Of a DNA stretch of 64,000 nt, positions 18,122-54,394 are shown piece after piece. Source of the stretch: Blastocladiella emersonii ATCC 22665 (lineage: Eukaryota > Fungi > Blastocladiomycota). Within the stretch, counting starts at the first letter, position 1, and the number at the start of each line of letters is the position of its first letter. Both the position numbers and the translations under genes were made by a program. The notes under the pieces are model-generated. The model did not search any database. It had not been told where the DNA came from and saw only the letters and a list, made by a program, of their open reading frames with translations. Location of the stretch: assembly GCA_025594325.1 (NCBI GenBank), contig JANHCV010000001.1, positions 4,836,001 through 4,900,000 of the forward strand. Reading direction: 5' to 3'.

Positions 18122-18481
18122 TTGGTGGGAGGGCGAGTACGTGGTGCAAGGGATAGAGGGTCCGATGGACGGGAAGGCAGGAACAAGTCGGAGTTGGTCG
18201 GGCGGGGACGCCCGTGCGAGCAGATCAGCGGGACCGTCTCGGGCAATGAGTTACGTTGCAATCAGTGGGGATGGTATTCGGTGCCATGAGGTGCATTGCT
18301 CGTGGCGGCCGTCCATCGCACACGGCGAGCGCGTCCGCCGCGACGCAAAAGAGGGGCAGCCTGAACCGCTCAGGGGTAGTGGCGCTGGGCATCACGTTGG
18401 TGGCGCACGCGCTCTGCGTCTCCTTTCCCGCCTCAGCGTCCAGCTCACCCTCCCCCTCCGCCCAAGGCCGAGAACCTAATC

Positions 18482-19743
18482 ATGGAGCAACCTAATGCAA
18501 CGAATGAAGAACTGCCAACGCTCGCCGCGTCGCTCGCCACGGAGTGCGAGTGCACCGCCAAGTATCCGGCGGCTGTCCGCCACCTGCAGCGCGTCGCCGC
18601 CAGTGGGGACGAATCCGACATAGGTGTCGAGTTCCGCGGCAAGACATACTCTCTGCACCGAGTCATGCTTATCCAGAGCCCGTTCCTCCGAGCGCTTCTC
18701 AGCGACGCCTGGCATTGTCCTGGCGACAACGGCGTCCCCCGCATCATGTTCACCCTGTCTGACGACGATGCGGAACACGGCAGCACCGACGCACGCGCTA
18801 TTTATGCCTGGGAAACCGCCATTGCCGTCATGTACGGTGCATGCACCAAGATTACTGCCGCCCGCATGTCGGACCGGAACTTCATGGACATTCTTGATGC
18901 GGCTCTCTTCTTCGGTACGTTTTGCTTGACGCAGCATGGAGCGACGTTACTCACTTTGTATCCACGCGCTCAGACCTTCCCGAGCTGGCCAACGCGTGCC
19001 GCGAGTACAACCTGGCGCGGCTCGCCAACTGCGCGGCCACGTCGGACCCTCCCTCCGCGGCGTTTATCTCCCTCGTCGCGCGTGTCATGGCATTTTGTTC
19101 GCGGGCGGCACTACCTAAACAAGTCGCCGAGCTGCTCAATCTTACCATCGCTCATCTCCAGTTTCTTGGCACACACTCTATCACGCGCACGATCCTTGAG
19201 CAGTGTGATTCCAGTCTCGTCTCCCGCGTCGTTGGCTCGCCCACTTTCTGGATCCCCTCCGAGTACCAGTTTTTCGAGTTTCTCGCCGAACTCAAGGTGG
19301 CGCCCGCGCTTATCCTGCGCGTCGTCAAGTTCAATACCATGTCCGACGGCGAAATGTTTCGGGTGCTCTCCAGCCCGCTTGCCTTGGCTGATTCGCACTT
19401 CCATCTCGGAGTCCGCGCCGCTGCCTTCCAGGCACATGAACTTCGGGCTGCGATCCTCGAGGCGAAACCAGACGATACACGCTTGCCCCAGCCTGGCTAC
19501 CCTGACCCGCCGACAGCATTCGAGCCAATTGAATGGAGTGGCCCTGCTGGGAGCGGGGACAACTTGGGACAAGGGCCGAATCACGCACGCGTGCTTGATC
19601 CCGTCTTGGCTAAACGCCGGCACTGCCTGCGGGTGACGCTCTCCTTTGACGCCGATTCCAGCGACCCGATCATTCTTGGCGAGCCCGTGTTCTTTGGCGG
19701 GGCGTTTCGCCAGCTTCGAGCTACTCGAAACAAGGAGAACTGA
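18482..19743 (+). CDS. BTB/POZ domain protein (germ-cell-less-like); the C-terminus probably continues to 20044 in a +1 frame
   Basis: The BTB start SDIGVEFRGKTYSLHRVMLIQSPFLRALL is present. An intron at ~18916-18972 joins FF|DLPELANAC. Confidence 0.7.
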
Positions 19744-20402
19744 ATCGACGAATCGCCCATGTAGTAAACCCTGCAAGTCGAGCACGCCAGCTCCATACAC
19801 AGATCCGCGGAGTAGTATCCACCAACGCGCTCGCATCATGACACCATTTGCTGGCAACTCTAGCCCTCGACTTGCATGCTCCCTTCTGCAACCGAGCTCC
19901 TTCGCCGCCTGGTCGGTGCCAAAGTGGTCCAGGCCGCTGACTCTAGAGAGCGGTTCTGGCTGGGTTGATTCGTTCACCCCTGCCAAAACCTCAATCGACG
20001 GGAAGAAGACTATTCGCGTTGCTGCCCTGTTCGAACTGCTTTGAGCGATCGTTACTCTTGCCGTAAGGATTTGGGAATTGACGTGCATCTATTTTTCTTC
20101 CGCTTCGAGCCTTGATGGCCATGAGGAGGTGGAATCGATATTCCCGCACCGCGTCGTTCTCCACTTTGATGTTGCTCTCGCAAACCTTTCGCGTTGAAAA
20201 CACGGGCATACTTCCAGCCGTCAGGTAGCGTGAGGAGCAATATACTTTTATTAAGTGCTGAAACAACGCGAATGCCTGGCGTCTTCACGAAACCGCGACT
20301 CAAGGGGGACGCGTCGCGATATCATGTGATCGACGTGAGACGCGACTGTCTCGCGCTTGTCCGCCCGTTCGCGAGCGCCGATCCGGTAGCCGTCCGAACG
20401 GG

Positions 20403-20458
20403 CTTTCTCCTCCCACGCGAGCTGCGCAATTTTTCACAGCCAGCGCAGGAGGAGAAAG
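20403..20458 (+). repeat. 56-nt hairpin element, copy A
   Basis: CTTTCTCCTCC...GCTG-CGCAATTTTTCA-CAGC...GGAGGAGAAAG, with a perfect 11-bp outer stem. Confidence 0.85.
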
Positions 20459-21291
20459 GGAGCTCATGCGGGTGTCGGAGCGGGTGCTGAGAGCGCGCAC
20501 CAAGTCGTCTGAGCAAGGCTTAGAGCGGCGACATGCAAGCGAGCGTGCCACGGAGCGAGGAGTGAAAAAATTGCACCACTTGATCGTGAAATCAAGGCAA
20601 GGAAGTGTCGCGAAAACGGTACTAGTAGGAGCAAACACCTTGCGCGAGTGGGCCGAAAGGATTGCAGAGTCGCGCGCGTCATACTTGTCGGTGATGCCGC
20701 GATGATCCTACATATCCGCGTGGTGGTGAGCAGTTGCGCTATGGGTGAGGTGCCGAGTCACAGCATACGTCAGCGGCGGATGAGGTCGCGCTGGCGCGAT
20801 GTCGCTTGAGCGTGAACATTTCCGAGTTGATCTACGTGATCGCGTGCGCCAGTGAGTAGGGTACGAGAAGGGTGGGAAGGCGTGCTGCAGCTTACGCCTC
20901 TCGGTTACGGCAAGCACAAGGGCGAGTGAGACTTTGCTACTCATGATCGACCAAGACGCGCGGCTGTTGCAGTTCAGCTATGACCACAAACTTGCCCTGA
21001 TCAGCGAGGACCGAAATGGCACGCAAATGACGCATTCACCCTCCTCTGGTCAAAAGAGCGATGGATGGATGCAAATAGGCGTGAGCGGTGTAATCACCAA
21101 ACGCAGGCCATGAGTTGATGGAATCGGACGTACCAAAGTCTCAGGCAACATTTCGAGTTCGCACCGTGCTGCGGCCAGCGATTCAGAGCAGCCGACGACA
21201 TAGATGACGTTCAACGACGGTGCAGCGGCCCGCTGATTCACAACGCGGACCGGGACAACCTGAACGCCGACCGCGTACCACTCAAGTCGAG

Positions 21292-21347
21292 CTTTTCCTT
21301 CGCACGCGCGTTGCGCACTTTTTCACAGCGCGCGCACGGGGGAAAAG
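21292..21347 (+). repeat. 56-nt hairpin element, copy B
   Basis: CTTTTCCTTCG...TTG-CGCACTTTTTCA-CAG...CGGGGGAAAAG. Confidence 0.85.
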
Positions 21348-22149
21348 GAAGATACCACGGGTACCGGATCGGAGTCAAAGTGCACGCGGTCCCGCTCGTG
21401 AAGTTGGTCCGCATCGTGACGTGGTCGTGAAATGAAAGCGGAGCGTTAAGTTGAATGGCCAAATCGATCTTTCTCGCTGATCCAGTCCAGTTCGAGGCCG
21501 CTTGCTTCCAGGGGAGCTGTCCTTGCCTGTGCACGCGCAAGTGAGATGAGGACTCCACAACGAGACTAAGGGGAAGGCGTACCTTCAATTACGGCACGTC
21601 TGCCTCGCACGAAATACAAGCAAGTCGCGTGGACCAATGTGCGAGAGCAGCTGGAAGTTGTCGACTGACACATCACCCTAACTGTCAACGCTGATACGAG
21701 CAGGATCCGACCCCATCACCCACAAAGCAAGCACAAATGATCCGAAAGGAACGGTAAGCAACCGAGCTGAACCGCCGGCGGGCCCACGTTGCGAGGGACG
21801 GCGGCATGGCAACGGCGGCGTCAGCCGCATCAGGGCGGTGACCATCCGAGCGCGACCGAGAAACGCTGACCGCGGCGCCAAGTTACATTCGACCAGTGCG
21901 GGCCGCAGAGCAAGTTTCGGCCGCCCAATTGCATCAGCTTTCATAGGTTGGGGAGCGTGGACCGAGCGCGAGGGCGTTCGTCGACTTGAGCGGAACGCGT
22001 CTCGGCGATCATCACGTTGGTGGCGCCCGGTGTGGCGCACGCGCGTGGGGCGGGCGTCGAGTCTCCCTTCCTCGGCGCTCCCCTCCCTCCCCTTCCCTCA
22101 CACCCCGCCCCTCCATGTATCTTGCCCGCCGGACCAACTGATCGCAACC

Positions 22150-22627
22150 ATGTCCTCGTCCTCCTCCGTCTCCTGGACCGGCCGCGCCGTGCTGCTCTCG
22201 GCGTTCCTGCTGCTCGCGCACGCCGGGTACTCGGCGCTCGAGCGTTCGTAGCCCTGGACGACGCGCTACCACGATCCACATGTGTAACCGGACCGTCTTG
22301 ACGCGTAGACGTGGCGTACCTCAAGACGATCGACCGGGTCGACGACGGCCTGACGACCGACGTACGCTTCCCCCTCGCCCGCACCCGCCAGTCCCCTAAC
22401 GCGCCGCTGCCACGTAGATCATCCTCGAGACGCTCATCTCGATGCTGCTGTGCTTTGTCGGGATCGCGCTGGTCGCCGACCCGCTGCAAGAGCTGGCGCT
22501 GCACTCGGAGCTCAAGAAGCAGTCGCGCAACGCCTTTGAGGCGCGCCCGAGCTACCACAGCTTCGGCCACCGCGCCCGCCACTTTAGCGCGCTCCTCGCT
22601 GCGTCTGCGGCGCCCGCGCAAGAGTGA
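22150..22627 (+). CDS. EMC5: ER membrane complex subunit 5 / MMgT family, 3 exons
   Basis: MSSSSSVSWTGRAVLLSAFLLLAHAGYSALE / VAYLKTIDRVDDGLTTD / IILETLISMLLCFVGIALVADPLQEL...FEARPSYHSFGHRA matches the MMgT/EMC5 pattern. Confidence 0.85.
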
Positions 22628-22676
22628 TGATGTGACCGAATCTATATATGAAATGCGTTCCTCTCCCTCCCTCACT

Positions 22677-25600
22677 TCACGCGACCTCGGGCACCGGCAC
22701 CACGAACTTGAGCGCGCTAACGAGCGGGTGCGGGGTGCCCACGCGCGCCGCGTGGCACAGGAGCGTCCAGGGCGCCGCGGGCCGGCCGAGCGCGCGGACC
22801 ACGACCTCGCGGGCCTCGCGCGCGGGGACCCCGCACAGCGTGACGGCCGGGTGGCCGAGCAGCCGGACGCCCGCGAGCGCGTCGGGGCGGACCTGGACCA
22901 GAAAGTTCTGCGGCATGTCGGCGTGGTTGTGCACGGCGAGCGTGACCTCGTGCAGGTGCGGCGTCACGGGCGACCGGGTGACGCGGGCGACGGCGACGTC
23001 GATCGACTGCTCCCACAGGAGCGGGATGTGCGCCGGGTCGACGGCGAGCGCGGCCAGGTCCACGTCCCCGGCGTGCCCGTCGTCGGACGTCCACGACGCG
23101 CGCACGCGCGAGAGTATGTACTCCTTGAGCCAGAAGCACATGGTCTTCTCGCGGAAGTTGGCCGGCAGCTGGCCGTGCTTGGTCATCACGAACTGTTTCG
23201 CCTTGAGCGTCGGGATCGCCGCCACCAGGTCCGACTCGGCCGCCACGCAACGCGGCAGCGTCACGGCGCACCGCCGCGTCGAGCCCGCCTGCACCGTGAC
23301 CACGTCTTCTTCGTCACCCTCGGTCGAGTTGGAGTCGGACCCGGACGACTGCAGCCGCACGCGGATCGGGACGTGGTGCTGGTTGGCGAAATCGACGTGC
23401 ACGCGGACGCGGTCGCCCGCCTCAGCCGCGGTAGCCGTAGCGCGCGACACGGACAGCGCGGCGGCCGCGACCGACGGCGCGACCGTGACGCTGAGCGACG
23501 TGGTGAGGTGCCGCGAAAAACTGGCCCCGCCGATCCCGTACACGAGATGCACATCGACCCCCGTACACCCTCGCTTGCCGAACGCGCGGAGCGGGAGCCG
23601 GACGGCCGCGCCCGCGGGGATCGACGCGGGGACGTCGCCGTCGACGGCGAGGGCCGCGTGCGCGAGGTCGTACTTGTCGGCGCCGTGGACCGCGATCGGG
23701 TCGCTCTCGTTGACGGGCGGGAGCGTGCGGTGCTCGGCGAACTGGAGCTGCAGCGAGGTCACGGGGAGCGACCCGACGTTGTGCACCTGCAGCGCGAGGT
23801 CCGTCCACTGGCCCTCGAGCAGCACCACGCACTTGTGCACGGCGCCCAGGCTGCGCACGCGGAGCAGCGGCAAAGGGTCGATCACGTCCCACGTGAGGTC
23901 GCCGCCAGCTGCGTCTGCGGGGTCGTCGGCGGGAGCCCCCAAAAGGCTGCCGCCGTGGCTCGCGGACCGCGCGTGCGAGGCGGCGGACCGCGACGCGGAA
24001 GCGGGGTTGAGCGCCTCGGTGGCCGTCATCTTGATCTTGGGCTGCGGCGCGGGCGGGCCGCCCGTCAGCGTGCACTGCTCCTTGACGCCGAAGATGCGGA
24101 ACTCGCACCCGAGCACGCGCAGGCGGCCGGTCCCGCGCGGCGTGCCCTTGAGCGTGACAGTGACGCTGCCGAGGGCCGGGAGGGACACGTCAATGGGCTC
24201 GGGGTCGAACGACACGCCCGCCGGCGCACCCTCGCCACCCTCCTCCTCGGATGCGGTGGGCGTGCCATCCTCGGTGAGCAGCGCCATGGCCTCGAGCGTG
24301 ACCGAGAACGAGAACGGGTTGACGAGCTGGCACTTGAATGCGACGGGCTCGCCGGCGACGAGGTGCAGCGGGGCGTCCTTGGCGCCGCGCTTGGCGAACG
24401 CCGAGTACAGGAACGGGTCCTTGGCGGCATCCGCCTTGACGACGGCGCGCTTGTGCGGCATGAGTGCGGCGGACGGCGGGACGACGGCGATCTTCTTGAG
24501 GAACGCGAACTGGCGCAGCGGGCGGCCCTCGAGCGACTGCGACCCTTTCGACGACCGCTGCAGGCGCGCGACAATGTCGAGCATGCCGTCGAGCGACAGC
24601 ATGCTCTGCAGGCGCTGGAAGCACTTGACGATGAGCAGCGTCAGCGAGCTCGCGTCCTCGACCGCGTCGGCCAGCCGGATGCAGTCGTCGAGCACCGCCG
24701 TCTGCAGCGCGGGCCACCCAAGGGGCTCGACCGTCAGCAGGCCGTACAGGTGCGCGAGCTTGTCCATGAGCTGGAACTGCGTGGCCGGCGCGACGTGCGC
24801 GGCGGGCGCCTCGGCGAGCACCGTCGCGGTCCCGCGCACCGCCAGCATCAGGAACAGCGCCTGCTTGCGGACGAACCCGAGCGCGCCGAACAGCGCCGCG
24901 GCCTCGACGGCGAGCGCGAGCTGCGCGCGCGGGCTGACGCCGGTGCCCGTACCGAGGTCCATCCCCGAGGTCAGCAGCGCGGCAGTCGCAGCGCGCGGTC
25001 GGCCCGCGGCGTGCATGACGGCGGCGAGCCGGACGCTGAGCTCGGCGGCGAGCAGCGGCGCCTCGCCGCGCTCGTACATGGCGACGACCTCGGTGAACTT
25101 GCTCTCGACGTCGGCCACGCCGGCCACCTTGAGCCACTCGCGCACGGGCTGCGGCAGTGACGTCATTTTTTCGGCGGCGTCCGGCACCACGTCGCGCAGC
25201 GTCAGCATCGCCGTGTACAGGCCCTCCATGGCGGCGGCGAGCCACAGGTGGTCGAGGTTGGCTTTCGCCGCGTCCATGGCCTCGAGGTACTTGTCGATGG
25301 CCGCGGGGAGCTTTCCCGCGAGGAGCAGCAGGTCCGCGACGAGTTTCGCGGCGCGGCCCGGCGCGCGCTTCTTGAGCCGCGCTTCCTGCGTCTGCAGCAG
25401 CGCCGCGGGCTGGAACCCGGCACCTCCAGCGCCGCCGGACCCACCGCCGCCGCCGCCAACGGCCGTGACGGCGGCGGACATGGGCGACCCGGGGGTGACG
25501 AGGGCCGTGGGCGACATGGCGGCGTTGAACTCGTTGGAGAGGGCGGCGCCGGCGAACCCGAGCGCGTTGGGCGGCGGCGAGTGGATGACGGAGCGGACCT

Positions 25601-26200
25601 CGATGCTGGCGGCCATATCCTGGAACCCGGACAGCAGGGCAGTGGCGAGGTCGCACACGAGCGTGTGGGTGTAGAAGGCGAGGTCGCCGGCGGTCGGGAT
25701 CAGGGTCAGGTCCGGGATCGTGTCGGCGAGCTCGTCGTCGGGGGAAAACGCCAGGCACCGGTGGACCAGCGCGGCCTGGAACTTGGGCACGACGTGGTGC
25801 ATGAAGGCGGCGTGGCACTCGGGCACGGCGTGTAGCCCGCACTCGCCGCAGTGCATGATCCCGACTACGGCTAGCACCGACCGCGCCTTCTGGAACTCCT
25901 CGAGCGTCACGTACTCGTCGTCGTACTCGGTCACGAACGACAGCCGCAGGATGCCGTTCGGGAACGTTGGGCCCGTGAACTCGCCTACGCGAACGCGGGG
26001 TGTCAGTCTTGTGCGATGGGGATGAGTCTCGAGAGCAACGCACTCCGGTTCTCGGTGACATCGGGCGTCAGCTCGCCGAGCGCAACATGCGAGTGCTCGC
26101 GCAGGCGGGCGAGCGCGGCCTGGAACGACGCGCGCCGGATGCGCCCGACGGGGACCACCAGCACGCGCACGCTGGTCGTCGGCTCGAATAGGGGCTCCAT
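22677..26200 (-). CDS. TRS120: TRAPP II complex subunit Trs120/TRAPPC9, 2 exons
   Basis: The N-terminal SVRVLVVPVGRI..FQ..L..L is followed by an intron and then GILRLSFVTEYD..YVTLEEFQKARSVLAVVGIMHC. It also has GRAAKLVADLLLLAGK, DHLWLAAAMEG, GFVRKQA and KDPFLYSAF. Confidence 0.88.
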
Positions 26201-26390
26201 GGCGGTTGCGGCGACTAGTTCATGGGTTACGTGGTTCGTTGCTGGGAGAGGAAGCGGTCGTGGTGGCGAAGGCGGCGCGATGTCGAGCGCGTGGTGTGTG
26301 GCGTCGTTGGCCGTCGCCGCGCTCGCGATGCTCACACGTGGGCCCGTTTCTCTCGCCGCGGTGAAGGCGACGACGGCCTCGATGACAGCC

Positions 26391-27672
26391 ATGGACGCGC
26401 AACTCGATGCAACGGCGGTAGTGGGCGCTGAGACCGACGGGACCGCGGCGGTCGAGCCAGTCGCTGATTCGGCGGCGTACCCGGCGTTCCACTTCGACTA
26501 CGAGCACAAGCAGCCCGCGGCGCTCGTGGTGAGCACGGCGCGCACGATCCCGAGCCTCGCCAAGAGCGTGGCTGACGCCGACAACTTTACGCGCTGGGCT
26601 GCCTGGTACGCTCGCCCATCTTGCCCTGCTCCCTCACCGCTTCGGCTGACCGTCGCGCCCACAGAGCAGGTCTCCCGATGCCGCGACGCTCGCGACCGTG
26701 TCCAACGACCGCACCGTGCGCTTCTGGTCGTCGGCCGCGCTGCTCTCGAGCGCAACGCCCGCCCCGCCCGCCTCGACCATTGCGAGCCACTTCACGTGCG
26801 CCGAGTCGGTGTACGACCTCGCGTGGTACCCGTACGCGTCGGACCTCGCCGCCGTGTCGATGCCGCACCAGCCGATCCACCTGCTCAGCGCGGCGACGGG
26901 GCAGCCGGCAGCGACGTATGTCGCGTTTGACCACCTTGACCAAGTCGCAGGCCCGACCTCGCTCGCCTTCTGCCCGCGCACGGGCCACCTGCTCGCCGGG
27001 TTCACGGGCTGGCTGCAGCGCATTGACCCGTCGCGCTCCGGCCGCGTCGAGAACGGCGCGCGGATCGCGACCACGCCCACGCGCCGGTCGCGCCTCGGCC
27101 AGAAGGGCATCCTGTCGTCGATCGCGCACATCCCCGAGTACGCCGGGTACGCCGTCGCCTCGTACCGCCGCACGCTCGGCGTCTACGACGCGGCCACCGA
27201 TACCTGCGCGCACCTCGTCCGCGGCCTCCCGCCCGCCACGCACCTCGCGGCGCACGCGCACCTGCTCGTCAGCAGTCACCGCGAGGCCGGCGGCCTCGTC
27301 GCCGCGCACGATGTGCGGAATCTCGCGCGACCGCTGTGGACGTACGAGCGCGGCGACGGGACGAATATGCGCTCCAGTGTTACGGTGACCCCCGCGGGGG
27401 ATGTCGTTATGGCGGCCGCGGGACCCGGTGGGCGCGAGGTGCATGTCACGGACGCGGCGACGGGGGCGCGACGCGGGAAGGTTGTGGGGGTGGCGGACGA
27501 CCTCGTCGCGTGCTGCGCGGTCCGCGACGCGTGGTGGGCCACGACCGCTGGGCAGCGGCACTACCGCGACCCAACGGCGGCCGCCGAGGAGGACGCAGAG
27601 GCCGTGGAGCGCGACAATGCGCTGCGCGTGTGGCAGGTCCAGGGCGAGTACCGCGCAGTGGGTGGTGACTAG
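26391..27672 (+). CDS. WRAP53: WD40 protein WRAP53/TCAB1 (telomerase Cajal body protein) homolog, 2 exons
   Basis: DNFTRWAAW|SPD..., ESVYDLAWYP, PIHLLSAATGQPAATYVAFDHLDQVAGPTSLAF and GQKGILSSIA parallel the WRAP53 motifs. Confidence 0.75.
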
Positions 27673-27713
27673 CAGTGCGTGATATATTATTGCTTATGTA
27701 CAAAATACGTGAT

Positions 27714-29321
27714 CTAGCTCGCTTCCTCGTCGTCGGACCCGCCTTCGCTCGCCGAGTCGGCGAGGAACAACAGCCGCGCGTCGTCGCCCGTCGCGAACGC
27801 AGCCGCCGCGGCCGGACCAGCGGCGTCCGCGGACGACCTGCTGCGGTCGAGCAGGTGCGCGTGCTTGGTGCGAAAGTCGGGGGACGGCGAGCGGTGCCGG
27901 AGGTGCGAGCCGGGGTGGCCTGCTGCCGCTCCCGCCTCGTCGTCGTGGTGCGGAGACTCGGCCGCGTCGAAGAGGACCTGCGTCATGTCCTCGTCGTCGT
28001 CGTCGTCGGTGTCCTCGTCGGTGTCCTCGTCGTCGCCAATGACAAAGTGCGAAGAGAGGCTTGGACCGGTCACGGCGTCCATCTCGGTCGGCGCATAGTC
28101 GGCCGTCGCGGCGGCGCGCGCCACGGCCTGGTACTTGTAGTAGTTGAAGTAGGCGATGGCGCCGAGGCAGATGACCATCCCGACGACGTTCATGGGTGTG
28201 AGCGCGTCGCCGAGGAAAAGCACACCGATCAAGATGGTCAAGACCTCCTTGGCGGTGCCCGCGACCGAGATGGTGAGCCCGGACGTGAGCTGGATCGCGC
28301 GGTACTCGGTGACGATCATCGAGAACGCGAGCGTCCCGCCGAGCACAATGAGACCGAGCGTATGCGCCGTGGCCGACGACGAGTTGAAAAAGTCGGTGGT
28401 CCCCATGGACCCGATCGGCTCGATGGCGGCCGCCATCGGTAGCAGCGTGAGGAACATGAACGGCGCGAGGTACAGGTTGGTCATGAACGGGTTATCGAGG
28501 CGCAGCTCGGACCGCTGGAGGAGGACCTGGATCAGGATCATGCGCAGTCCCCCGAGCACCGACGCGGCCATGACCTGCGCGAACCCGACCCACTCGAACG
28601 CCGACTCGTGCGCGTGCGCGACCATCAGGCACATGCCGAGCGAGATGCTGATCATGACGACTACCAGGCGCACCGAGAGCCGCTCGAGCCCGAGGGCGAG
28701 CGCGAACACCAGGCCAAAGAACGGGACGCTGCTCTTGACCATCGTGTAAAACGAGAGCGACAGCGTCTTGAGCGACGCATTCGACAGGCCAATGTCGAGC
28801 GCCGTCGCCATGCCGCACGGGATGACGCGGATCAGGACGCGGCGGAGCGACGGGCGCGGCGAGGCCGGCGGCGTGTCGGTGCCGCCCTGGTCGTCGTCGG
28901 TCCGCACGGCAATCGCATGGTGGTGATGCCGCGACGAGCTGCTGCCGCCCTCGGGCTTGTCGGCGAGCAGCAGCGCGTCCTGGTGCTCCTTATTGCGCCG
29001 ACTACCCGACGACGACGACGACGCGACCGCCGCGACGCCGTCCTCGACGAGCGGGATGAAGGTCACCCGCACCCCGCTCCCGCTAACGCGCCGCCACGGC
29101 AGCTCGAGCTTGCCCGCGGCGACCAGGACCGCGGCCGAGAAGGCAAAGTGCAGCGTCGCGTGCAGGCACGTTGTGAGGAGCGGGAACGGGAAGTGCAGGC
29201 CATTCTTGCCGAAAAGCGTCTTGTTGTAAACACTCAGCGCGATGGACAGCGCATACCAGCCAAGCGTGTAGCCGATGGGCGCGAGGCCGAGACCCGGCAG
29301 GCCGGGTGGAGATGGATGCAT
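27714..29321 (-). CDS. Triose-phosphate/nucleotide-sugar transporter family (SLC35C2/Ymd8-like)
   Basis: It has ALSVYNKTLF..FPFPLLTTCLH, ALDIGLSNASLKTLSLSFYTMVKSS and SVAGTAKEVLTI, with multiple TM helices. Confidence 0.88.
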   Translation of the reverse strand: MHPSPPGLPGLGLAPIGYTLGWYALSIALSVYNKTLFGKNGLHFPFPLLTTCLHATLHFAFSAAVLVAAGKLELPWRRVSGSGVRVTFIPLVEDGVAAVASSSSSGSRRNKEHQDALLLADKPEGGSSSSRHHHHAIAVRTDDDQGGTDTPPASPRPSLRRVLIRVIPCGMATALDIGLSNASLKTLSLSFYTMVKSSVPFFGLVFALALGLERLSVRLVVVMISISLGMCLMVAHAHESAFEWVGFAQVMAASVLGGLRMILIQVLLQRSELRLDNPFMTNLYLAPFMFLTLLPMAAAIEPIGSMGTTDFFNSSSATAHTLGLIVLGGTLAFSMIVTEYRAIQLTSGLTISVAGTAKEVLTILIGVLFLGDALTPMNVVGMVICLGAIAYFNYYKYQAVARAAATADYAPTEMDAVTGPSLSSHFVIGDDEDTDEDTDDDDDEDMTQVLFDAAESPHHDDEAGAAAGHPGSHLRHRSPSPDFRTKHAHLLDRSRSSADAAGPAAAAAFATGDDARLLFLADSASEGGSDDEEAS

Positions 29322-29555
29322 GTGCTTCGTCGTGTGTGCAAGAGGGCGAGTTGGGGAGAGCGAGAGAGGAAGGCGGCGAGGAGCGCGAAGGCTTCGCCGC
29401 CGTGTGGCGTAGCTCTCCGACCCGCTGCCGCCGCCACTCACGCGAGCGCGGCCAACCTCGCGTCTCTCACATCACAGCTTAGATCACAGCGGTTGGAGTG
29501 TATTGACATGAGGGCATAGACACAGCGCACATAGACACAGCGCAAAGACGCGCGC

Positions 29556-31373
29556 TCACGGCGGAGTCGCCATGCTCGTCGTCGACTGCGCGAATAGCGC
29601 GTCAATGTCGTTCGAGTGGTGTACGTACACCCGGTCGAGGACGGGCCGCGGCAGCGACCGCAGCGCCTTGATCATGCGCGCGTTCTCGGCCTCCTCGTCG
29701 AGGATCGACGACGAGTCGCCGCCCGCCTCGCTGCTCGTCGCCACCGACGCGCGGTCCGCCGCGTCGAGCGCGCCGAGGCTCGCGCTCCCGGTCCCGGCAC
29801 CCGTCGGGTCCTCGGCAATCGGCTCGCACGTCATGCTGCCGCCGCCGTGGTCCCCCATCGAGTGCGACGTCGGCAGGAGCGTCGGCGGGGACTGCGCGTG
29901 CAACGTCCCCCCGCCGCCGCCCGTGTGGTGGCTGAGCCGGTCAGCCGACGACCGCGGCGATACGTTGGACGGCGACGACACGCCCGAGTGGTCAAAGTGG
30001 CGCAGGTAGATGGCCTCGTTGGACGACCGCAGCTGCTGCGTGCCGCCCGTCATGACCGACGGCGACCGCACCGCGCGCACCGACGACGATTCGGGCCCGT
30101 TCTTGTGCGTCGACGCCAGCGTGCCGTGCACGGGCGTGACGGCGGCGCTCGGCATCCCGTGCGACGAGGCCGCGTGCCCGTTAGCCGACGCGTTGTTGAG
30201 CGGCGACGGCGTGTACACGGCCGTCGTCGACGCGGACGCGCCGTGCGCACGGGGGTTCGCGCGGCCGACGTTGTTCATTGAAGCCGAGTGCGCCGAACGG
30301 CCGCCGCCCGGCTTGGGCTTGGCCGACGACGACGGGCTGCCTGAGGACGATGGGACCGTGGCGGCCGACCGTTTGCTCGACTTGCTGTTCCCCGACTTGC
30401 GCGCGCTCCGCGACACGCCAAACGACGTGAGCAGCTCGTCGATATCGACGGGCGTGGGCAGCGGGAGGTCGCGGACCACGGCGCTGGCGCTGGGCTCGAG
30501 CAGCGGCGACGCGGTGCCGTGGCCGCGCGTCCCGGCGGGCGACCCGAGATCGTTCATGGACCGGTACCGCACCGTGACCGAGGCCACGGGGATCCCGCTA
30601 TCGGACCCGATCGGCGACAGCGCCGTTTTCGGGTTGTCGGCGCCGTTGACCTTGTTCGGGGGGTCGCGCGTGAGCGTCATGCCGGGCGCCGACCACCGGC
30701 GGACGTGGTCGTGGCGCCCACCGTTTTTGGCGGACAGCGTGTTGCTGTTGCGGACCGCGGCATCGGCCTTGGTCTCCTCAACCTCGGCCAGGATCGTGTC
30801 GATATCCACGTTCTGGCGCCCGTGCCGCAGGTACGGCATCGTCGGCTCGGGCGTGTACGCGTCCTCGGGCTTGACGTACAGCGCGTACGTCGACCGCCCC
30901 GACAGCGCGTGCGACGACCCGGCCATCCCGCCCGCCGCGGCCGCCGCCCCCGCGGGCGAGTGGTGGTGGTTGGAAGCGGCGCGGCTGAGCTGCGGGCGGA
31001 TGCTGAGCCGGTGCACGAGCGTCGACACGCCGCGCGGGCGCGGAGTCTCGGAGACGGCGGGCTGCGCCTCTTGGACCGCGGCCTCGATGCCGAGCAGCTC
31101 GTCGATGTCGGACGTGAGCGGCGGGCGGTGCGACGGCGCCGGGCCCAGCGCCGCGGTACTCGAGTACCCGCCGCCCAGCTTGAACAGCGACCCGGCCTTG
31201 GTCAGCACGTTGCCGCTGGTGCTCTTCTTGAGCCGTCCGCCGCCGCCCGGGTCGCCACCGGCGGACGTGGACATGGGCCCGCGGTCGTCGTCGCGCAGCG
31301 GCTCGCGCGTGCTCGCCGCCACGCTCGACGTGTGGTGCATGTGGCTCGACATGGTCGAGCGGCTGTTCTTCAT
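29556..31373 (-). CDS. Intrinsically disordered S/H/G-rich hypothetical protein with four DID(E/T/A)(L/I)(L/F) motifs
   Basis: Single ORF from MKNSRSTMSS at 31373 with GC3-biased codons. Confidence 0.7.
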   Translation of the reverse strand: MKNSRSTMSSHMHHTSSVAASTREPLRDDDRGPMSTSAGGDPGGGGRLKKSTSGNVLTKAGSLFKLGGGYSSTAALGPAPSHRPPLTSDIDELLGIEAAVQEAQPAVSETPRPRGVSTLVHRLSIRPQLSRAASNHHHSPAGAAAAAGGMAGSSHALSGRSTYALYVKPEDAYTPEPTMPYLRHGRQNVDIDTILAEVEETKADAAVRNSNTLSAKNGGRHDHVRRWSAPGMTLTRDPPNKVNGADNPKTALSPIGSDSGIPVASVTVRYRSMNDLGSPAGTRGHGTASPLLEPSASAVVRDLPLPTPVDIDELLTSFGVSRSARKSGNSKSSKRSAATVPSSSGSPSSSAKPKPGGGRSAHSASMNNVGRANPRAHGASASTTAVYTPSPLNNASANGHAASSHGMPSAAVTPVHGTLASTHKNGPESSSVRAVRSPSVMTGGTQQLRSSNEAIYLRHFDHSGVSSPSNVSPRSSADRLSHHTGGGGGTLHAQSPPTLLPTSHSMGDHGGGSMTCEPIAEDPTGAGTGSASLGALDAADRASVATSSEAGGDSSSILDEEAENARMIKALRSLPRPVLDRVYVHHSNDIDALFAQSTTSMATPP

Positions 31374-31975
31374 GGTGGTGGTGGTGGCAGTGGTGATTCG
31401 TTCGGAAACCCCGATGGGTGAAGGTGGGGGGAGAAGCAGGGGTTCGCGGTTCGGAAACGGGGGGAAATTGTTGTAGCAGCGAACTGGGGCACAGGATGAA
31501 AGAGGGTGGGAGAGGGGCACGGGGGAAGAATATGATTGCATGACATCAATGGGCTGTCAAAGGGTGGCGAAACGCGTGCGCATGGGCGAGGAGACGCGAC
31601 GAAACAGGTGCGAGACATGCGAGACACGACACGTGATGGTCGCTGACCAACTTCAAAGTTGGCGACCGCCCTCGCGCTCGATCCGCTCTTCCCGAGCGAC
31701 GGAAGCACATGCATGCGGGCGGCCGCCCAAACGATTCGCGGCCGCCCAAACCGAATGTAACTTGTTGCAGCGGTTAGCGGAGCCACGTCAGGCTCGGCTC
31801 GGACGGCGTCCTGAATCCGACGCTTGAAGTCGTGCAAGGAGTTCGCCCCGTGCTTCGACTTCTGCCCGGCTTGCTTGTGCCCCGTCGCTCCCGGTTCGCT
31901 CGTGTCCGCTTCGCCGGCGTGTTGCCAGATCCGCGTCCGCTGCGCTGTCACCGCTCCGGTACCCACGTTCTCGGC

Positions 31976-32031
31976 CTTTCCCGTCGTGCGCGGGCTGTGA
32001 AAAAGTGCGCAGCGCGCGCACTACGGGAAAG
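31976..32031 (-). repeat. 56-nt hairpin element, copy C
   Basis: The minus strand reads CTTTCCCGT-A-GTGCGCG-C-GCTG-CGCACTTTTTCA-CAGC-C-CGCGCAC-G-ACGGGAAAG. Confidence 0.85.
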
Positions 32032-32598
32032 CTCGATTGTGTGGGTGCCGGGTCGTCGGTGCTGCAAGCGTGCGCTGGCCCGCTCATTGGGTGTTCGTTC
32101 CGAGCCTCCCGCGCTGAAGGTGAGCGCAGGTCGACTCGTAATCCTGTTGGTCGCATCCCCGTCGAAGCAGGGCGTCCGGCACGGTGGCTCGCTCTGTACT
32201 GCTGGCTGCACAAGAACTGCGCACGGGCTCCGCGCCACACGTCATCACGAAGTACCATCGCAACAAGCTCATCGTGGTGTACGGCTACACGTTCCAATGT
32301 ACATGCGCTCGTGCGGTAGACGCGCCCGCCAACGGTGCGTGCTTCACTGGCAAAAGCGACTGTATCTGTTTGGACATGTAAACTAATGTTGTTCGCGCAC
32401 CATGTCCAGATCGGTGTCCCTCACTTCGTTGTGAACTACTCACGAGGTTTCAAAGGGCTCCGAGAATACGAGGTTCTGGACAACTTCCGCCTCACCCCCA
32501 TCACCATGTCGCGCTCGCTCGCTGTCGGCGCCGTCAGGTTCTGACCAGGCGACCTCGCGCGCGTCCTCGGCGCCCGCTCCACCATCCACACGAGCAGC

Positions 32599-32654
32599 CT
32601 TTCTCCTCTTGCGCGTGCTGTGAAAAGCTACGCAGCGCGCGCAGGGGGAGAAAG
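32599..32654 (-). repeat. 56-nt hairpin element, copy D
   Basis: The minus strand reads CTTTCTCC...TGCGCG-C-GCTG-CGTAGCTTTTCA-CAGC-A-CGCGCA...GGAGAAAG. Confidence 0.85.
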
Positions 32655-32809
32655 CTCGCTCGTGCGGCTGCTGGTGCGGGCGGACGGGCGCGAGACAGTC
32701 GCGTCTCGCGTCGATCGCGCGATGTCCCGGCACGGTGTTGCGAACGAATGGTTGGTTTGTATGCGTAGTCAATAAACAAAAATGTACACGTCGTCATCGT
32801 CGTTGCCTT

Positions 32810-34477
32810 CTACTTGACTAGGATGACGCCGGTGTTCTCGGACGCGGCCTTATCCTGCTTGCGGCCCGCGACGAGCTGCACCTGGTACTTCTCGAACACC
32901 TTGACCGCCGTGGCCTCGGTGACGCCCTGCTTGCGGCAGTCGGCGACCCACTCGGCAAGGGGCTTCTTGGCGAGCTCCATCCACGGCGGCATGCGGCCGA
33001 GCTCGCCGCGCGCGGCGCGCTCCATCTTCTCGCCAAGCGTCGACGACGACGTGGTGAAGGGGATGATCTTCTCGAGCGAGATGGCGTTGTTGGACCAGGT
33101 CGCGATCTTGCGGGCGAGCATCTTGTACGGCCACTTGGACGGGTGGATCGGGCCCGAGGCCGCCGCGGCCGTCGCGTTGAGGCGGCCCGTCACGGCCGAC
33201 TTGGCGTGGTCCATGGACGAGGCCTTGAGGTTGGCCACGTAGCGCGCCGTCGACAGCGAGTGCTGCGAGTCGGCGAGCGACGGCGCGAGGTGGCCGATGA
33301 ACACGGTGCGCGTCGGCAGCGAGGACGTCGGGTCGAGCGCCTCCTTGAGGACCAGCGTGAGCTTGGAGGTGCGGAACGGGATATGGATGTGCTTGCCCGT
33401 GTCGAGCGAGTGCAGGTAGCGGTTGCGGATGCACTCCTTGAGGGTGGCGAGCGACTTGTTGGTCACCTGCGTCTCGCGGATCCGGACCGCGTCGTGGTGG
33501 GCCTGGTCGCTGCTGCGCTCGGATCCGGCGAGGTCGACCATGAGCAGCGTCGACGCGCCGAGCGGCAGGTGGCCGTCCTCGTCGGCGGCGGGCAGCGGGT
33601 CGGCCTTGCGGCGGAACGACACGGCGCACACGGCGTGCGAGCGCGACGACACGTCGTTCTTGAAGGTGGCGCGGGTACGGCGGTGCTGCGCGCCGACCTC
33701 GACGACCGTGAGGAACTCCTCGGCCGTCTCGACGGGCACCTGCAGGGCGCCGACGACCACGGTCGACTCGGCCGTGGCGCGGATCCGCAGCTCGGCGCGC
33801 TCGTTGAGTAGGTCCGTGACCGTGTCGCCGTAGATCTCAAAGTACGAGACCGTGACCGTGTACTCGTCGGCGATCCCCGGGAACAGGTCGAGCGGCAGCC
33901 GCTCGTGCAGCGACGTCATGGTGAACGTCTTTCCCGAGCCAGTCTGACCAAAGCACAGCGCCGTAGCGAGCCCGCCGCGCAGGACGAACGGGATCAGCGG
34001 CTGCAGCACCGACGCGTAGATGGTCTCGGTGTCGGCGTCGGGGCCGAACGACACGTCGACGTTGTCGAACCGGTGCGTCTCGAGCGACAGCGCCGAGAAG
34101 GTGCCCTCGATCGGGTGGTAGATGTAGGTCGCCGGGTTCTGGACGTGGATGCCCGTGAACAGGCCGCGCTCGGACACCTCGTGCGGCAGGATCGGCCGCA
34201 CGCGCAGCGCGACGCTGATGGTCTGGTCGAAATCCGTGTCCCCGTACGGCCGCGCCTCGGACGGGTCCAGCGTCGCCTGGTGCGACCGCATCGCCTCCTC
34301 GAGCCGCGGCTGCTCGCGCTGCAGCGGCGTCATGGCGGCGCGTGCGGCGGCGGCGGCCAGGCGCTCCTCCTTGGTCATGGCGGGCTTGGACCGGCTGCGC
34401 GCCCGCGCGGCGGCGGCCGACGGCGTGGTGCGTGTGGTGGTCCGGGACGACGAGTGTAGCATGGTGTCGTCTTGCAT
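32810..34477 (-). CDS. Kinesin motor protein, kinesin-13-related
   Basis: It has P-loop GQTGSGKT, switch I NDVSSRSH, switch II DLAGSE, NKSLATLKECIR and HIPFRTSKLT. Confidence 0.88.
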   Translation of the reverse strand: MQDDTMLHSSSRTTTRTTPSAAAARARSRSKPAMTKEERLAAAAARAAMTPLQREQPRLEEAMRSHQATLDPSEARPYGDTDFDQTISVALRVRPILPHEVSERGLFTGIHVQNPATYIYHPIEGTFSALSLETHRFDNVDVSFGPDADTETIYASVLQPLIPFVLRGGLATALCFGQTGSGKTFTMTSLHERLPLDLFPGIADEYTVTVSYFEIYGDTVTDLLNERAELRIRATAESTVVVGALQVPVETAEEFLTVVEVGAQHRRTRATFKNDVSSRSHAVCAVSFRRKADPLPAADEDGHLPLGASTLLMVDLAGSERSSDQAHHDAVRIRETQVTNKSLATLKECIRNRYLHSLDTGKHIHIPFRTSKLTLVLKEALDPTSSLPTRTVFIGHLAPSLADSQHSLSTARYVANLKASSMDHAKSAVTGRLNATAAAASGPIHPSKWPYKMLARKIATWSNNAISLEKIIPFTTSSSTLGEKMERAARGELGRMPPWMELAKKPLAEWVADCRKQGVTEATAVKVFEKYQVQLVAGRKQDKAASENTGVILVK

Positions 34478-34713
34478 GTGCAAATTTTGAGGTGTTGGCG
34501 TGGGAAGAGAGAGGGAGCGTGGGGGAGGTGCCCGCTTTTTGAGATCCGAGTGACCCGACACGGCGCGTGTGGCGTGCGGACGCGCCGCGCCTGTGCGACG
34601 CCCCGCTGTCGCTTCCGGGCGCGCTCCCTGGCCGACTTCATTCCACTCCGCAACCAGGCAACCGATTAAAGAAGTTTCATATTTGCACCAGTGACGGTGG
34701 CGAGGGGGCGAGA

Positions 34714-36411
34714 TCACCCGCAGCCGGGATCATCCTCGGCCGGTGCTGACCGAGTCGGCGTCGCGGCGGCCGCGGACTTCTTCTTGCGGTTCCGCCGCGA
34801 AGACGACGCCGACTTGGTGGCAGAGTCGCCGTTCGCGCCGCCTGGTGCAGAAGCGCCCTCCGCGGCATCGTCGCCGTCAGCGGGAGGAGCACCGGCCTCG
34901 GCGGCATCGCGTCGCGCCTTACCCTTGCCCTTCTTGCCGCCCGCCGACTTGACGGCAGCGGCCGCTGCGGCCTCGGCCTCGGCGTCGACGTAGACGGGCC
35001 GCACCGCGAGTGATGCGTGGAAGAAGGCGCCGGTCCCCTCGGCCGCGTCCTTGCCGGCCTTGTCCTTGGCCACCGCCGCTGTCGCGGACGGGTCCGCGGG
35101 CTTGTTCTTGCCGCCGACCACGCGCGCCTTGCCGCCCTTGGTGTCGACGAGCGTCCACGAGTAGACGGCGTTGGCGATCTCGTCCGCGTCGTCAAGTAGC
35201 TCCTCCTCGTCCTCGTCGTCCGCGTCCACTGCAGCCGCGGTCGCCGGCGTGGCCTCCGAGACAGAGAGGTTCTGCAGGTCAAGGTCGATCGCGTACCCGC
35301 CGGTGCGCACGGGCGCCGCCGCGGCCTTGAGTGCGGTAGCCTTGCGCTCGGCGCGCTTGCGCTCCGCGTCGGTCAGCCACTGCTTCCCGATCCCCTGGTA
35401 GTCGATGAAGTCGGCCTTGACGTCGATCACGGTGGTCCGCTGCGCGCTCGTCGCGTCGTACTCGAGCAGCCGCGCCTGGTTGGCCTGCGCGCGCTCGAGC
35501 AGGTCGCGGTCCACGACGCGCAGCGCGGTCGCGTCGTCGGCGCCGCCGCCGCGGTTGTGCAGGCGCGCGAGCTGGTCGGCGCCCGAGAGCACCACCTCGC
35601 CGCACGTGAAGCACGAGCCGGGACCCTCGGCCATGCACAGGATCCGGCCGCAGCCCAGGCAGTTGGTGAAAAGTTCGTGCTGCGTGGCTACAATCGACGA
35701 TGTGGTAAGCGGCGCTCGATCGGATTGAAGGAAAGGAAGGCATACCAGCACATCCACACGCGCGGCGGTCCTTGTTGAGCAGACCCTTGCGCTCGAGCTC
35801 CGTGAACTCGGCGAGCGTCATGCCGCCGTTGCGCTTGGCCTCCTTGGCGCGCTTGCGCTTCTGCCGCTCGCTCTCGGGCTTGTCGTTGAGCGCGGGCGTG
35901 CTCGAGCGCGCCTGTTCCGCGGCGGCCGCTGCCGCGGCGGCGGCCACAGCGGCAGCGGCCTCGGCCTCGGCAGCAGCGCGGGCCTCTTGGAACGCCGACG
36001 CGTACGAGATGCCGGCGACGGGCGTCGCGGTGTGCCTACACGCGCTCGCCGTGTCAGCAGGAGTGGGTACAACTCGGCGGGTTCACGGTCGACGAGGCGT
36101 ACTTGGGCTGCGGCTCGGCCTCGGGCAGGTTGAACCGGCCGAACCGGCGCGCAACAAACTCGCCGATCAGCGTCAGCATCTCGGCCTCCTCGCCGAGAAA
36201 GTTCTACACGGTGCGGTGGCCGCCGTCAGCGACTCGTGCTCGCCCGGTCTCGTACAGCAGATCCGCGTACTAGCAGCGTCGAGGACAGCTCGGCCTCGTC
36301 CATGGACTTGAAGTAGGGCAGCGTGCCCTCGCGGATGTCGGCCTCGGGCAGGCCCATGTGCATCGACAGCACATGCGTCGCCCAGTCGTCAAAGTCGGCA
36401 ATGTTGCTCAT
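34714..36411 (-). CDS. TRIP4: Activating signal cointegrator 1 / Rqt4-like C2HC5 zinc-finger protein, multi-exon
   Basis: CGC|ATQHELFTNCLGCGRILCMAEGPGSCFTCG forms the zf-C2HC5, followed by ARLLEYDATSAQRTTVID. The N-terminal exon is ORF 36226..36411. Confidence 0.8.
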
Positions 36412-54011: not shown

Positions 54012-54394
54012 TTTTCACCTTGTCTTCATATTATACCCAGTTTTTGCTTCTCTCCACACGTTGTTGCTGGTCGCAAGGAGTGATGAAATGTTTTGATCGT
54101 GGGCTGATCCGATGAACGACGCGTGGCGCACGGCCATGCAGCCTCACTTCCCGGCGGCCCGGTTGCTTGAATTTGAACGCGATTCGCTGGAGTAAGCGAC
54201 GGTTAGCCTGGATACGCATGGAAACGCTTGAAAACGCGTCGCGCGGCGGCGTGGCGTAAGCAAGGACGCGTCCGTCACATGGGGGATGCGGTACGCGCTC
54301 TCAGCGACGGCCACAGCGCACCGCTCAGGCGAGCTCTTCCCACTGACTCTCTAGAGCCCCCGCCTCCATGTCAATCGAATGAAAACTTGCTGCA

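Follow-up and report, generated by a model that had tools for sequence, protein, structure and literature searches.

Dispersed hairpin repeats that combine clean covariation with an invariant loop are well known from bacteria, as the REP sequences, and from organelles; to our knowledge, there is no report of them from the nucleus of a fungus. REP/BIME (RAYT) elements are short, GC-rich, imperfect palindromes present in more than 100 copies, extragenic, positioned past gene 3′ ends or between convergent genes and often arrayed, and their stems are kept while the stem sequence drifts. Palindromic MITEs and foldback elements, a group that takes in the MITE-derived hairpin RNA loci of plants, are inverted repeats of a few hundred base pairs that lie near genes and fold into long hairpins. 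Mobile hairpin repeats are also known from the phylum studied here, in the Allomyces mitochondrial double-hairpin elements and fungal mitochondrial GC clusters. Two further systems invite comparison: Helitron2/Helentron elements, with compensatory-change hairpins, head-to-tail arrays, variable interiors, and a single-strand intermediate, and the Rnt1p-type RNase III and fail-safe termination hairpins found downstream of genes, in which the terminal loop is conserved and sets a cleavage site at a measured distance down a stem whose sequence is free.

The hairpins of Blastocladiella emersonii, whose lineage lies near the base of the fungi and is under development as an optogenetic model, resemble each of these systems and depart from each. 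Unlike REP/BIME elements, they are eukaryotic and nuclear, form a 55–56-nt apex on a 150–300-bp palindrome, are invariant in the loop rather than in a 5′ tetranucleotide, stand ~1.2 kb apart rather than adjacent within arrays, and come from a genome in which no Y1 transposase was found. Strong covariation, an invariant asymmetric loop, and strand-biased pairing set them apart from MITEs and foldback elements, as does the lack of visible target-site duplications, sharp ends, or recent near-identical bursts. The Allomyces elements and GC clusters are short, mitochondrial, and double, whereas the present hairpins lie on Mb-scale nuclear contigs. In contrast to Helitron2, the same module flanks each spacer on both sides, the complementary arms are long, and no hairpin site is near a Rep gene. 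Finally, the loop is not the AGNN (or AAGU) tetraloop of Rnt1p substrates but 7–8 nt long, rich in A on one strand and in U on its complement; a single RNase III-domain gene was detected, and cleavage of the present hairpins is putative. We found no description of this family in Rfam or in the literature searched.

Four hairpins in two tandem pairs

The window is a 64,000-nt stretch of the B. emersonii genome (contig JANHCV010000001.1). An earlier note on it reported four dispersed hairpins of 56 nt, and all four (A–D) are present where it had placed them, on the strands and with the length that it gave (Table 1). Where 0.07 occurrences of their loop word would be expected in the window, there are four. 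Folding yields one hairpin per 56-mer, with energies of −29.5 to −34.7 kcal/mol (z −5.9 to −6.8) in the family orientation and −31.1 to −45.1 kcal/mol for the reverse complement; on the + strand, which carries the GUGAAAA loop, hairpin D folds with a perfect 24-bp stem and an 8-nt loop. When positions 17–36 kb were scanned with a covariance model, A–D scored 66–76 bits, the background at most 15 bits, and the sole other matches above 15 bits were the same four sites on the opposite strand (25.6–38.3 bits).

Several details of the earlier description changed once the family was seen as a whole. A CTTT...AAAG boundary marks the small subfamily of A–D, but most copies start with GGGCC or CGCAG; the fixed 56-nt length holds for A–D and becomes 55–56 nt family-wide, with the change in length confined to the loop and none in the stems; and what had been described as a 12-nt loop is a loop of 7–8 nt closed by four further positions, among them an invariant C.A (U.G on the other strand). 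The partial loop word noticed near 20563 was located at 20562–20576; it is not a family copy, since the covariance model finds no match there even at E values up to 10.

Judged from their alignments, the A–B and D–C pairs are the two copies of a segment that was duplicated long ago in inverted orientation. Positions 20315–20553 match the reverse complement of 32504–32729 at 72.5% over 240 nt, and the duplicated block beyond hairpins B and C is the far edge of the segment that carried both pairs. Neither a coding gene (GC of 53–64%, with no third-position GC signal, vs at least 0.8 in real genes) nor a repeated transposon body lies between the hairpins: the A–B spacer is unique, and the spacers of other loci could not be aligned as DNA or in translation. 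Near position 20044, domain searches confirmed no BTB domain.

Table 1. Annotated features of the window (positions from its first letter; fold energies in kcal/mol; a point marks features given without strand)
Feature	Position	Strand	Remarks
Hairpin A	20403..20458	+ (family orientation +; better-pairing strand −)	66.4 bits; −29.5 on +, −40.2 on −
Hairpin B	21292..21347	+	75.7 bits; −30.6 on +, −31.1 on −
Hairpin C	31976..32031	− (family orientation −; better-pairing strand +)	74.9 bits; −34.7 on −, −41.7 on +
Hairpin D	32599..32654	−	74.9 bits; −30.8 on −, −45.1 on +
Extended palindromic module around A	20310..20553	.	Inverted repeats; homologous to D module
Extended module around B	21265..21377	.	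Inverted repeat; homologous to C module, 80% over 95 nt
Extended module around C	31940..32070	.	Inverted repeat with 42-nt arms; folds as ~130-nt hairpin with internal loops
Extended module around D	32504..32734	.	Inverted repeats; homology to A module
A–B spacer	20459..21291	+	Unique in genome (self-match only); ~55% GC; no coding signal
D–C spacer	32032..32598	−	Non-coding; no alignment to A–B spacer (z 2.7)
Duplicated block	21864..21987	+	Inverted copy at 31656–31779; 72.4% over 127 nt
TRAPPC9/Trs120 gene	22677..25934	−	E 1.5e-103
661-aa ORF	29556..31541	−	GC3 0.91; no Pfam match
Kinesin gene	32810..34717	−	Kinesin motor, E 4.9e-60; GC3 0.92

A genome-wide family

Hairpins A–D, as two tandem pairs, belong to a family that extends across the genome of this GC-rich zoosporic fungus (32.65 Mb in 21 contigs). 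The covariance model returned 130 matches at ~110 distinct sites, all but ~45 of which were read as sequence, and their scores form a continuum from 78 down to ~40 bits; the exact loop pattern matched 93 times, against five in a control. Each hairpin tops a palindrome that extends over 150–300 bp, and copies occur singly or in same-strand arrays of 2–4, 0.6–1.6 kb apart. The longer palindrome, the size of the family, and the association with gene 3′ ends described below were absent from the earlier note.

Array spacers are unique, non-coding, and lower in GC, and no motif is conserved in them apart from GC-rich words. In 28 of 30 spacers, G exceeds C on the gene-sense strand, which makes the GUGAAAA strand C-rich, like known sense strands in this genome. 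In tandem duplicates, the modules are 80–83% identical, compared with 66–69% for alignable spacer; by hand count, their hairpin cores differ by 5–11%, a divergence 3–6 times slower than that of the co-duplicated spacer. Flank profiles run over ~240 kb gave 37 matches, all adjoining a hairpin core; flanks were never found alone. The best explanation is that self-contained modules were dispersed, whether by duplication or by transposition, and were also duplicated locally in tandem together with ~1 kb of fast-evolving non-coding DNA.

A search for environmental relatives gave no exact matches in metagenome contigs; 37 word matches in viral contigs, all at most 18 bits with the model, are chance, and a viral origin is rejected. 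The 36 TnpB/Fanzor-like genes of the genome do not co-locate with hairpin sites beyond chance.

Selection on a single-stranded structure

Among 63 distinct copies aligned, 91.7% of stem cells are paired, whereas shuffling leaves 74.2%. Both sides have changed in 19 of 21 stem pairs, and the stems are free of indels across the family. The covariation score is 0.471, a value reached in none of 500 shuffles, against 0.154 for shuffled alignments and at most 0.106 with the partner slid. The compensatory arm changes with retained length first noticed in four copies thus persist in 63, and the functional structure proposed from them is strongly borne out, fixed length and compensatory change implying selection on a single-strand structure. 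Compensation is concentrated between loci, where 8053 differences are compensated and 6169 one-sided; within arrays, 132 are one-sided and 18 compensated.

Sequence conservation resides at the apex: 62 of 63 copies carry the C.A (U.G), and the adjacent pairs are G-C in 62 of 63. Pairing is strand-asymmetric. Read on the gene-sense strand, mismatches comprise 80 A.C and 40 G.U; for the 17 lower pairs alone, the counts are 75 and 38, with loci split 21 vs 6 (p 0.006), and in the main subfamily, variation of the lower stem proceeds mostly through U.G on the GUGAAAA strand. This strand gives the more stable fold at 31 of 35 loci, a per-locus advantage that derives partly from the single invariant U.G common to all copies. 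It also forms a lower stem of 8–10 bp, joined 3–4 nt upstream of the hairpin and ~20 nt after it, from which complementarity continues to 60–150 nt. The statement that the transcribed strand could not be told holds for A–D taken alone but not for the family, in which the GUGAAAA-loop strand is favored. Likewise, a cruciform protein-binding site is disfavored because asymmetric pairing argues against any symmetric cruciform or double-stranded DNA site. However, G.T is tolerated in ssDNA hairpins much as G.U is in RNA, so the two nucleic acids are not told apart by the asymmetry. The constrained part is a strand-specific single-stranded hairpin with a 21–24-bp stem of fixed length and free sequence and a near-invariant apical motif.

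Placement at gene ends

In the window, the kinesin gene, on the strand of hairpin D's family orientation, has its stop codon 155 nt before D; hairpin C lies 434 nt upstream of the first ATG of the 661-aa ORF; and the TRAPPC9/Trs120 gene, transcribed toward B and A, ends 1,329 nt from B. Genome-wide, placement was scored in ~30 loci with genes called crudely from ORFs and GC3. Gene ends within 600 nt of a hairpin are 3′ ends in 14 cases and 5′ ends in 3, the first hairpin lies 150–600 nt past a stop codon in 14 clusters, and it is the hairpin end of an array that adjoins the stop codon. Classified by hand from the strands of the adjacent genes, 11 arrays have convergent neighbors, 8 have tandem neighbors, and none has divergent ones. 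No particular upstream gene family is involved; the neighbors are unrelated housekeeping genes. With respect to the gene whose stop codon is 150–600 nt from the hairpin, the GUGAAAA strand is the antisense one.

Structure and gene-end placement together point to an undescribed single-strand signal, probably of RNA, or to a mobile element.

Possible functions

Our preferred reading, which we hold tentatively, is that the hairpins are a duplicated palindromic repeat acting as a putative RNA hairpin that stops or processes transcripts entering a neighbor's 3′ end. The structure, its covariation, the family, its placement, and the strand asymmetry are established by the data, whereas transcription of the region, RNA and not ssDNA as the single-stranded form, and a role in termination or processing are inferred. 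The antisense placement of the GUGAAAA strand favors a mechanism acting on antisense transcripts. We posit that polymerases heading for the neighbor's 3′ end could be (i) reading through from a convergent gene or (ii) starting at a divergent promoter; in their RNA, the hairpin would form on the GUGAAAA strand, where a protein or an RNase III-type enzyme may read it through its loop and the measured length of its stem. The recognized transcript would then be stopped or cleaved before it runs antisense into the neighboring gene. Some observations weigh against such an RNA signal: one-sided changes within arrays and the continuum of scores look like decaying repeats, not tightly held functional sites, and a mobile origin is suggested by the 150–300 bp of homologous sequence that over 100 loci have in common. 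Terminators arrayed in groups of 2–4, ~1.2 kb apart, would also serve no obvious purpose.

The main rival, possible if doubtful, is a selfish, non-autonomous palindromic element (MITE-, foldback-, or REP-like) that does nothing for its host, whose transposase would read the loop and whose stem would form in a one-strand ssDNA intermediate. The hairpin would be kept while subfamilies were active, inserted copies would then decay, and most survivors would be found between convergent genes because an insertion is least harmful there. More than 100 dispersed copies, grouped into sequence subfamilies and sharing 100–300 bp, fit this account, as do the spread of scores, the mainly one-sided changes within arrays set against mainly compensated differences between loci, the avoidance of divergent promoter regions, the palindromic character of the entire module, as in many MITEs, and a one-strand G.T tolerance suited to an ssDNA intermediate. 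The account sits poorly with the slow divergence of the core relative to co-duplicated spacer and with the consistent facing of the hairpin end toward gene 3′ ends. Moreover, no near-identical groups hint at recent activity, near-identical copies being restricted to segmental duplicates, and pairwise alignments revealed neither sharp termini nor target-site duplications because conservation fades gradually from the center, although old copies could hide both. A Y1 (IS200/IS605/RAYT) transposase was not found either: the Y1 HUH profile PF01797 has no match in this genome but matches 6 of 14 control genomes. The suggestion of an attC- or REP-like site fails on defining features, given a eukaryotic genome with no Y1 transposase; an integron attC is further rejected because conservation lies at the loop rather than at the stem base.

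Small-RNA precursors, hpRNA- or miRNA-like, in which the ~22-bp stem would be diced and loaded into an Argonaute, are unlikely. A 21–24-bp stem with a 7–8-nt loop atop a longer imperfect hairpin has the appropriate shape, the genome encodes four Piwi-domain genes, and weak Rfam similarities include miRNA precursor models. But the arms, which would supply the small RNA, vary freely under an invariant loop, the reverse of miRNA families, and a single one-domain RNase III gene (C1:2959691–2960185) and a sub-threshold Dicer_dimer match are all that was detected; with no clear Dicer found, the Dicer-type precursor entertained earlier fits poorly. The view that the hairpins match no recognized RNA family stands: Rfam 15 gave no match at the gathering score for the window and 11 other loci, and relaxed E values brought up only miRNA, scaRNA, and CRISPR-repeat models at 14–27 bits, far under cut-offs of 38–98. 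Retrozyme or Penelope-type ribozyme repeats are rejected, no ribozyme family having appeared in these searches.

It is quite improbable that the hairpins are instead a sense-strand 3′-end signal of the upstream gene, with the U-run and following CA of the loop marking, in a very GC-rich genome, where transcripts are cleaved and polyadenylated or terminated. The spacing of the first hairpin from the stop codon, the strong fold on the sense strand too, and a positive spacer GC skew along the sense strand, like that of R-loop-type terminator zones, would suit such a signal, but the A.C mismatches and invariant C.A fall on the sense strand, second and third hairpins lie 1–3 kb past the gene, and only ~1% of genes would use it.

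Least probable are Helitron2/Helentron ends in head-to-tail arrays, in which one element's 3′ inverted repeat and hairpin would join the next element's 5′ inverted repeat: Helitron2 elements end in a hairpin on either side, with compensatory changes, and vary in their interiors (Bao and Jurka 2013, PMC3627910), the genome holds Helitron Rep genes (12 Helitron_like_N matches), and a 10-bp lower stem flanks the hairpin on the GUGAAAA strand at the spacing given above, but none of the 12 matches is near a hairpin site, complementarity spans 60–150 nt and not 8–15 bp, both arms are present in gene-proximal hairpins, and the junction model is rejected because the orphan 5′ half-module that it predicts at each array start was not found in the ~240 kb of flank searches.

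Concluding remarks

To return to the preferred RNA signal, we consider it a more speculative, rather doubtful step to view the family as a eukaryotic counterpart of REP turned dedicated RNA signal, a hairpin of constant length whose loop bears the invariant U.G and which a specific protein or RNase III would read, terminating or cleaving antisense and read-through transcripts and so shielding gene 3′ ends. If true, the hairpins would be RNA polymerase II terminators or insulators of a class not described before, multiplied by duplication in a compact, very GC-rich genome. As an RNA signal, they would offer a compact sequence-plus-structure element for termination or processing and a route to the protein that reads it; as a mobile element, they would constitute a eukaryotic family of single-strand hairpin transposons with no recognizable transposase.

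Four hairpins and their family

The 56-nt hairpins of the window, A to D, stand exactly where the earlier note had placed them. The loop word that they share has four occurrences in the window, where chance would give 0.07, and each copy folds as a single hairpin (z-scores -5.9 to -6.8). A covariance model of 16 genomic copies (A2, R1), run over 17-36 kb with speed filters off, gives them 66-76 bits, with weaker matches of 25.6-38.3 bits at the same four sites on the opposite strand. Since no other site on either strand of that interval exceeds 15 bits, the partial loop word that the note had picked out at ~20563 is not a copy.

The window spans C1:4836001-4900000 in an assembly of 21 contigs and 32.65 Mb; it has a GC content of 55-73% and carries the eukaryotic genes TRAPPC9, kinesin and triose-phosphate transporter. 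A genome-wide search for the loop word that tolerated one mismatch gave 16 sites, all of them hairpins (3 sites in a reversed control), and a loop-only pattern finds 93 (5 in the control). The covariance model yields at least 130 matches at no fewer than ~110 distinct sites distributed over almost all contigs, a lower bound because only 150 first-look candidates were scored; the copies read come from all but ~45 of these sites. The window copies belong to a small subfamily, and the majority of the family shares another arm sequence and a length of 55 nt.

Rfam searches matched no family, viral contigs searched gave no source of the hairpins, and metagenome contigs searched held no exact relatives. 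The genome has no Y1 transposase gene that we could find; its Helitron Rep genes and 36 TnpB/Fanzor-like genes show no co-location with the hairpins. The TnpB/Fanzor-like genes were matched in six frames by the Cas12f1-like TNB (zinc-ribbon) domain, many in long open frames, and include a 549-aa ORF of the window (E 3e-10). Elsewhere in the window, a multi-copy sequence recurs in at least 10 other places on C16, C19 and C20 at 64-79% identity (longest matches, 65-73%); it has no Pfam domain and a GC3 below that of ordinary genes here, and represents a gene family or, alternatively, an old mobile element; no BTB domain could be confirmed nearby. One of several multi-kb non-coding islands in the window is a stretch of 55-59% GC that lacks high-GC3 ORFs.

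Coordinates of hairpins and other features (window positions unless a contig or locus is named), with fold energies in kcal/mol
Feature	Position	Strand	Energy, GUGAAAA strand	Energy, other strand
Hairpin A	20403-20458	+	-40.2	-29.5
Hairpin B	21292-21347	+	-31.1	-30.6
Hairpin C	31976-32031	-	-41.7	-34.7
Hairpin D	32599-32654	-	-45.1	-30.8
Partial loop word	20562-20576			
Duplication blocks	20315-21987, 31656-32729			
Multi-copy sequence	~18475-19540	+		
ORF enclosing it	18380-19633	+		
549-aa TNB ORF	51193-52839	-		
Non-coding island	54000-60000			
RNase III-domain and Dicer_dimer loci	C1:2959691-2960185, C16:1047555-1047710			
Hairpin pair, 312-nt spacing	C16:731577/731889			
Hairpin pair, 413-nt spacing	C21:1311304/1311717			
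Array-unit traces	L048:5467-5520, L047:6104-6213			

Structure and strand

The hairpin caps a longer palindrome: around C the fold reaches ~130 nt, and for the main subfamily both sequence conservation and complementarity extend 60-150 nt per side. Read on one strand, the consensus folds with a lower stem of 8 bp; between it and the upper stem lie 3 nt on one side and ~21 nt on the opposite one. The compensatory change that had been reported for the arms is upheld by 63 distinct copies (A5), in which both sides have changed in 19 of 21 pairs and standard pairs fill 91.7% of cells, versus 74.2% in column shuffles. The observed covariation score of 0.471, which none of 500 shuffles reaches, compares with 0.154 when shuffled and at most 0.106 when the 3' partner is slid. 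A fixed length of 56 nt holds for A to D, and stem length is constant, with no stem indels in the copies read; family-wide, most copies measure 55 nt, all length variation lying in the loop. Nor is the loop the 12 nt first described: inward from three G-C/C-G pairs come a purine.G mismatch, a covarying C-G/U-A pair, G-C, a near-constant C.A (62 of 63 copies), G-C and a loop of 7-8 nt.

The strand, which the earlier note considered impossible to infer, is indeed not fixed by four copies, but emerges across the family. Non-Watson-Crick transition pairs in the stem are A.C in 80 cases and G.U in 40 on the gene-sense strand (75 and 38 in the 17 lower pairs; loci split 21 to 6, p 0.006), so the excess reads as G.U on the opposite strand. 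Folded as RNA, that strand, with its GUGAAAA loop, gives the more stable structure: of 35 loci, 31 show this for the core (by a mean of 3.9 kcal/mol, partly due to an invariant U.G) and 30 for a length of 206 nt; D forms on it an unbroken stem of 24 bp. In 28 of 30 intervals, the spacers between array hairpins have an excess of G on the gene-sense strand, which makes the GUGAAAA strand rich in C; sense strands of coding and 3'-flanking DNA here are also C-rich, a weak calibration for strand. The observed bias is expected of one strand acting in single-stranded form, as RNA or ssDNA; a symmetric cruciform or duplex-DNA site would yield none and is disfavored.

Arrays and duplications

Copies are single or form same-strand arrays of two to four, spaced mostly 1.0-1.3 kb apart (range 0.57-1.63 kb); two pairs stand closer. 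The DNA between array hairpins is unique in the genome, has 53-64% GC without the third-position signal of real genes here, and gave no alignment between loci. Four arrays (L060, L066, L048 and L047) retain collinear remnants of spacer homology past the last hairpin and are therefore tandem duplications of a unit of module plus ~1 kb. In tandem duplicates, modules are 80-83% identical versus 66-69% for alignable spacer, and hairpin cores diverge by 5-11% (differences counted by hand in the listed copies). Traces of an additional unit past the last detected hairpin of L048 and L047 suggest decayed copies below model detection.

Within the window, the pairs A-B and D-C represent an old segmental duplication in inverted order. 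Its blocks, 72-80% identical where surviving, bracket ~10 kb in which lie TRAPPC9, a 661-aa ORF and a sugar-phosphate transporter. Alignment at 72-80% is still possible for the modules and for a block 0.2-0.5 kb past B and C, but no longer for the two spacers (833 and 567 bp; z 2.7).

Gene context

With genes called heuristically (ORF of at least 90 aa, GC3 at least 0.8, GC1 > GC2), 14 of the 15 clusters that have a gene within 600 nt on their 5' side, in family orientation, adjoin a same-strand gene whose stop codon faces the hairpin, at a median of 438 nt. Toward the opposite side, the median distance to the closest gene is 988 nt. Among gene ends up to 600 nt from a hairpin, 14 are 3' ends and three are 5' ends; a second gene-context tally omits L063, where a same-strand gene stands 169 nt away. 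Neighbors of the 19 arrays with both genes called, strands classified by hand, are convergent in 11, tandem in 8 and divergent in none (~4.75, 9.5 and 4.75 expected; chi-square ~13, 2 df). Because the same-strand rule follows from geometry in convergent regions, the informative facts of placement are array polarity, 3'-end association and absence from divergent regions. In the window, 155 nt separate the kinesin stop from the start of D downstream of it, and 1,329 nt separate the TRAPPC9 stop from B, also downstream; C precedes the next gene's ATG by 434 nt. The adjoining genes are unrelated, including elsewhere TOR kinase, AP mu subunit, SMC, cap methyltransferase, an aminotransferase and a SPOC protein.

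Interpretation

Readings as a decaying repeat and as a function in place remain close. The family resembles repeats that have spread and then decayed, with subfamilies and a continuum of scores; changes in arrays are mostly one-sided (132 versus 18 compensated), and between loci compensated differences dominate. Function in place is suggested by several features: change in the core is several-fold slower than in co-duplicated DNA, loop and one wobble pair do not vary, stem length is constant, pairing is strand-specific, and the hairpin end points toward gene 3' ends. The main rival, nearly as probable as the reading favored below, is a wholly selfish palindromic element that would pass through an ssDNA intermediate. 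Small-RNA precursors are a lesser alternative, for which four Argonaute genes speak (Argonaute/Piwi loci on C11, C17 and C20) and against which stands the lack of a clear Dicer in the genome; a single RNase III-domain gene was found, and a Dicer_dimer match is sub-threshold. Also lesser is a 3'-end signal on the sense strand, opposite to the strand that folds more stably at most loci. Helitron2 elements, whose ends both carry hairpins and short asymmetric inverted repeats with compensatory changes (PMC3627910), are likewise a lesser candidate: all 37 matches of left- and right-flank profiles adjoin cores, so the module is one unit rather than two transposon ends meeting by chance, orphan half-modules were not found, and its complementary arms are long.

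Weighing the decay-like features against those of function in place, we tentatively favor a repeat that may work as an RNA hairpin. The hairpin would form on the GUGAAAA strand and would halt or process transcripts running toward the 3' end of the adjoining gene, its loop and measured stem being read in the manner of RNase III substrates.
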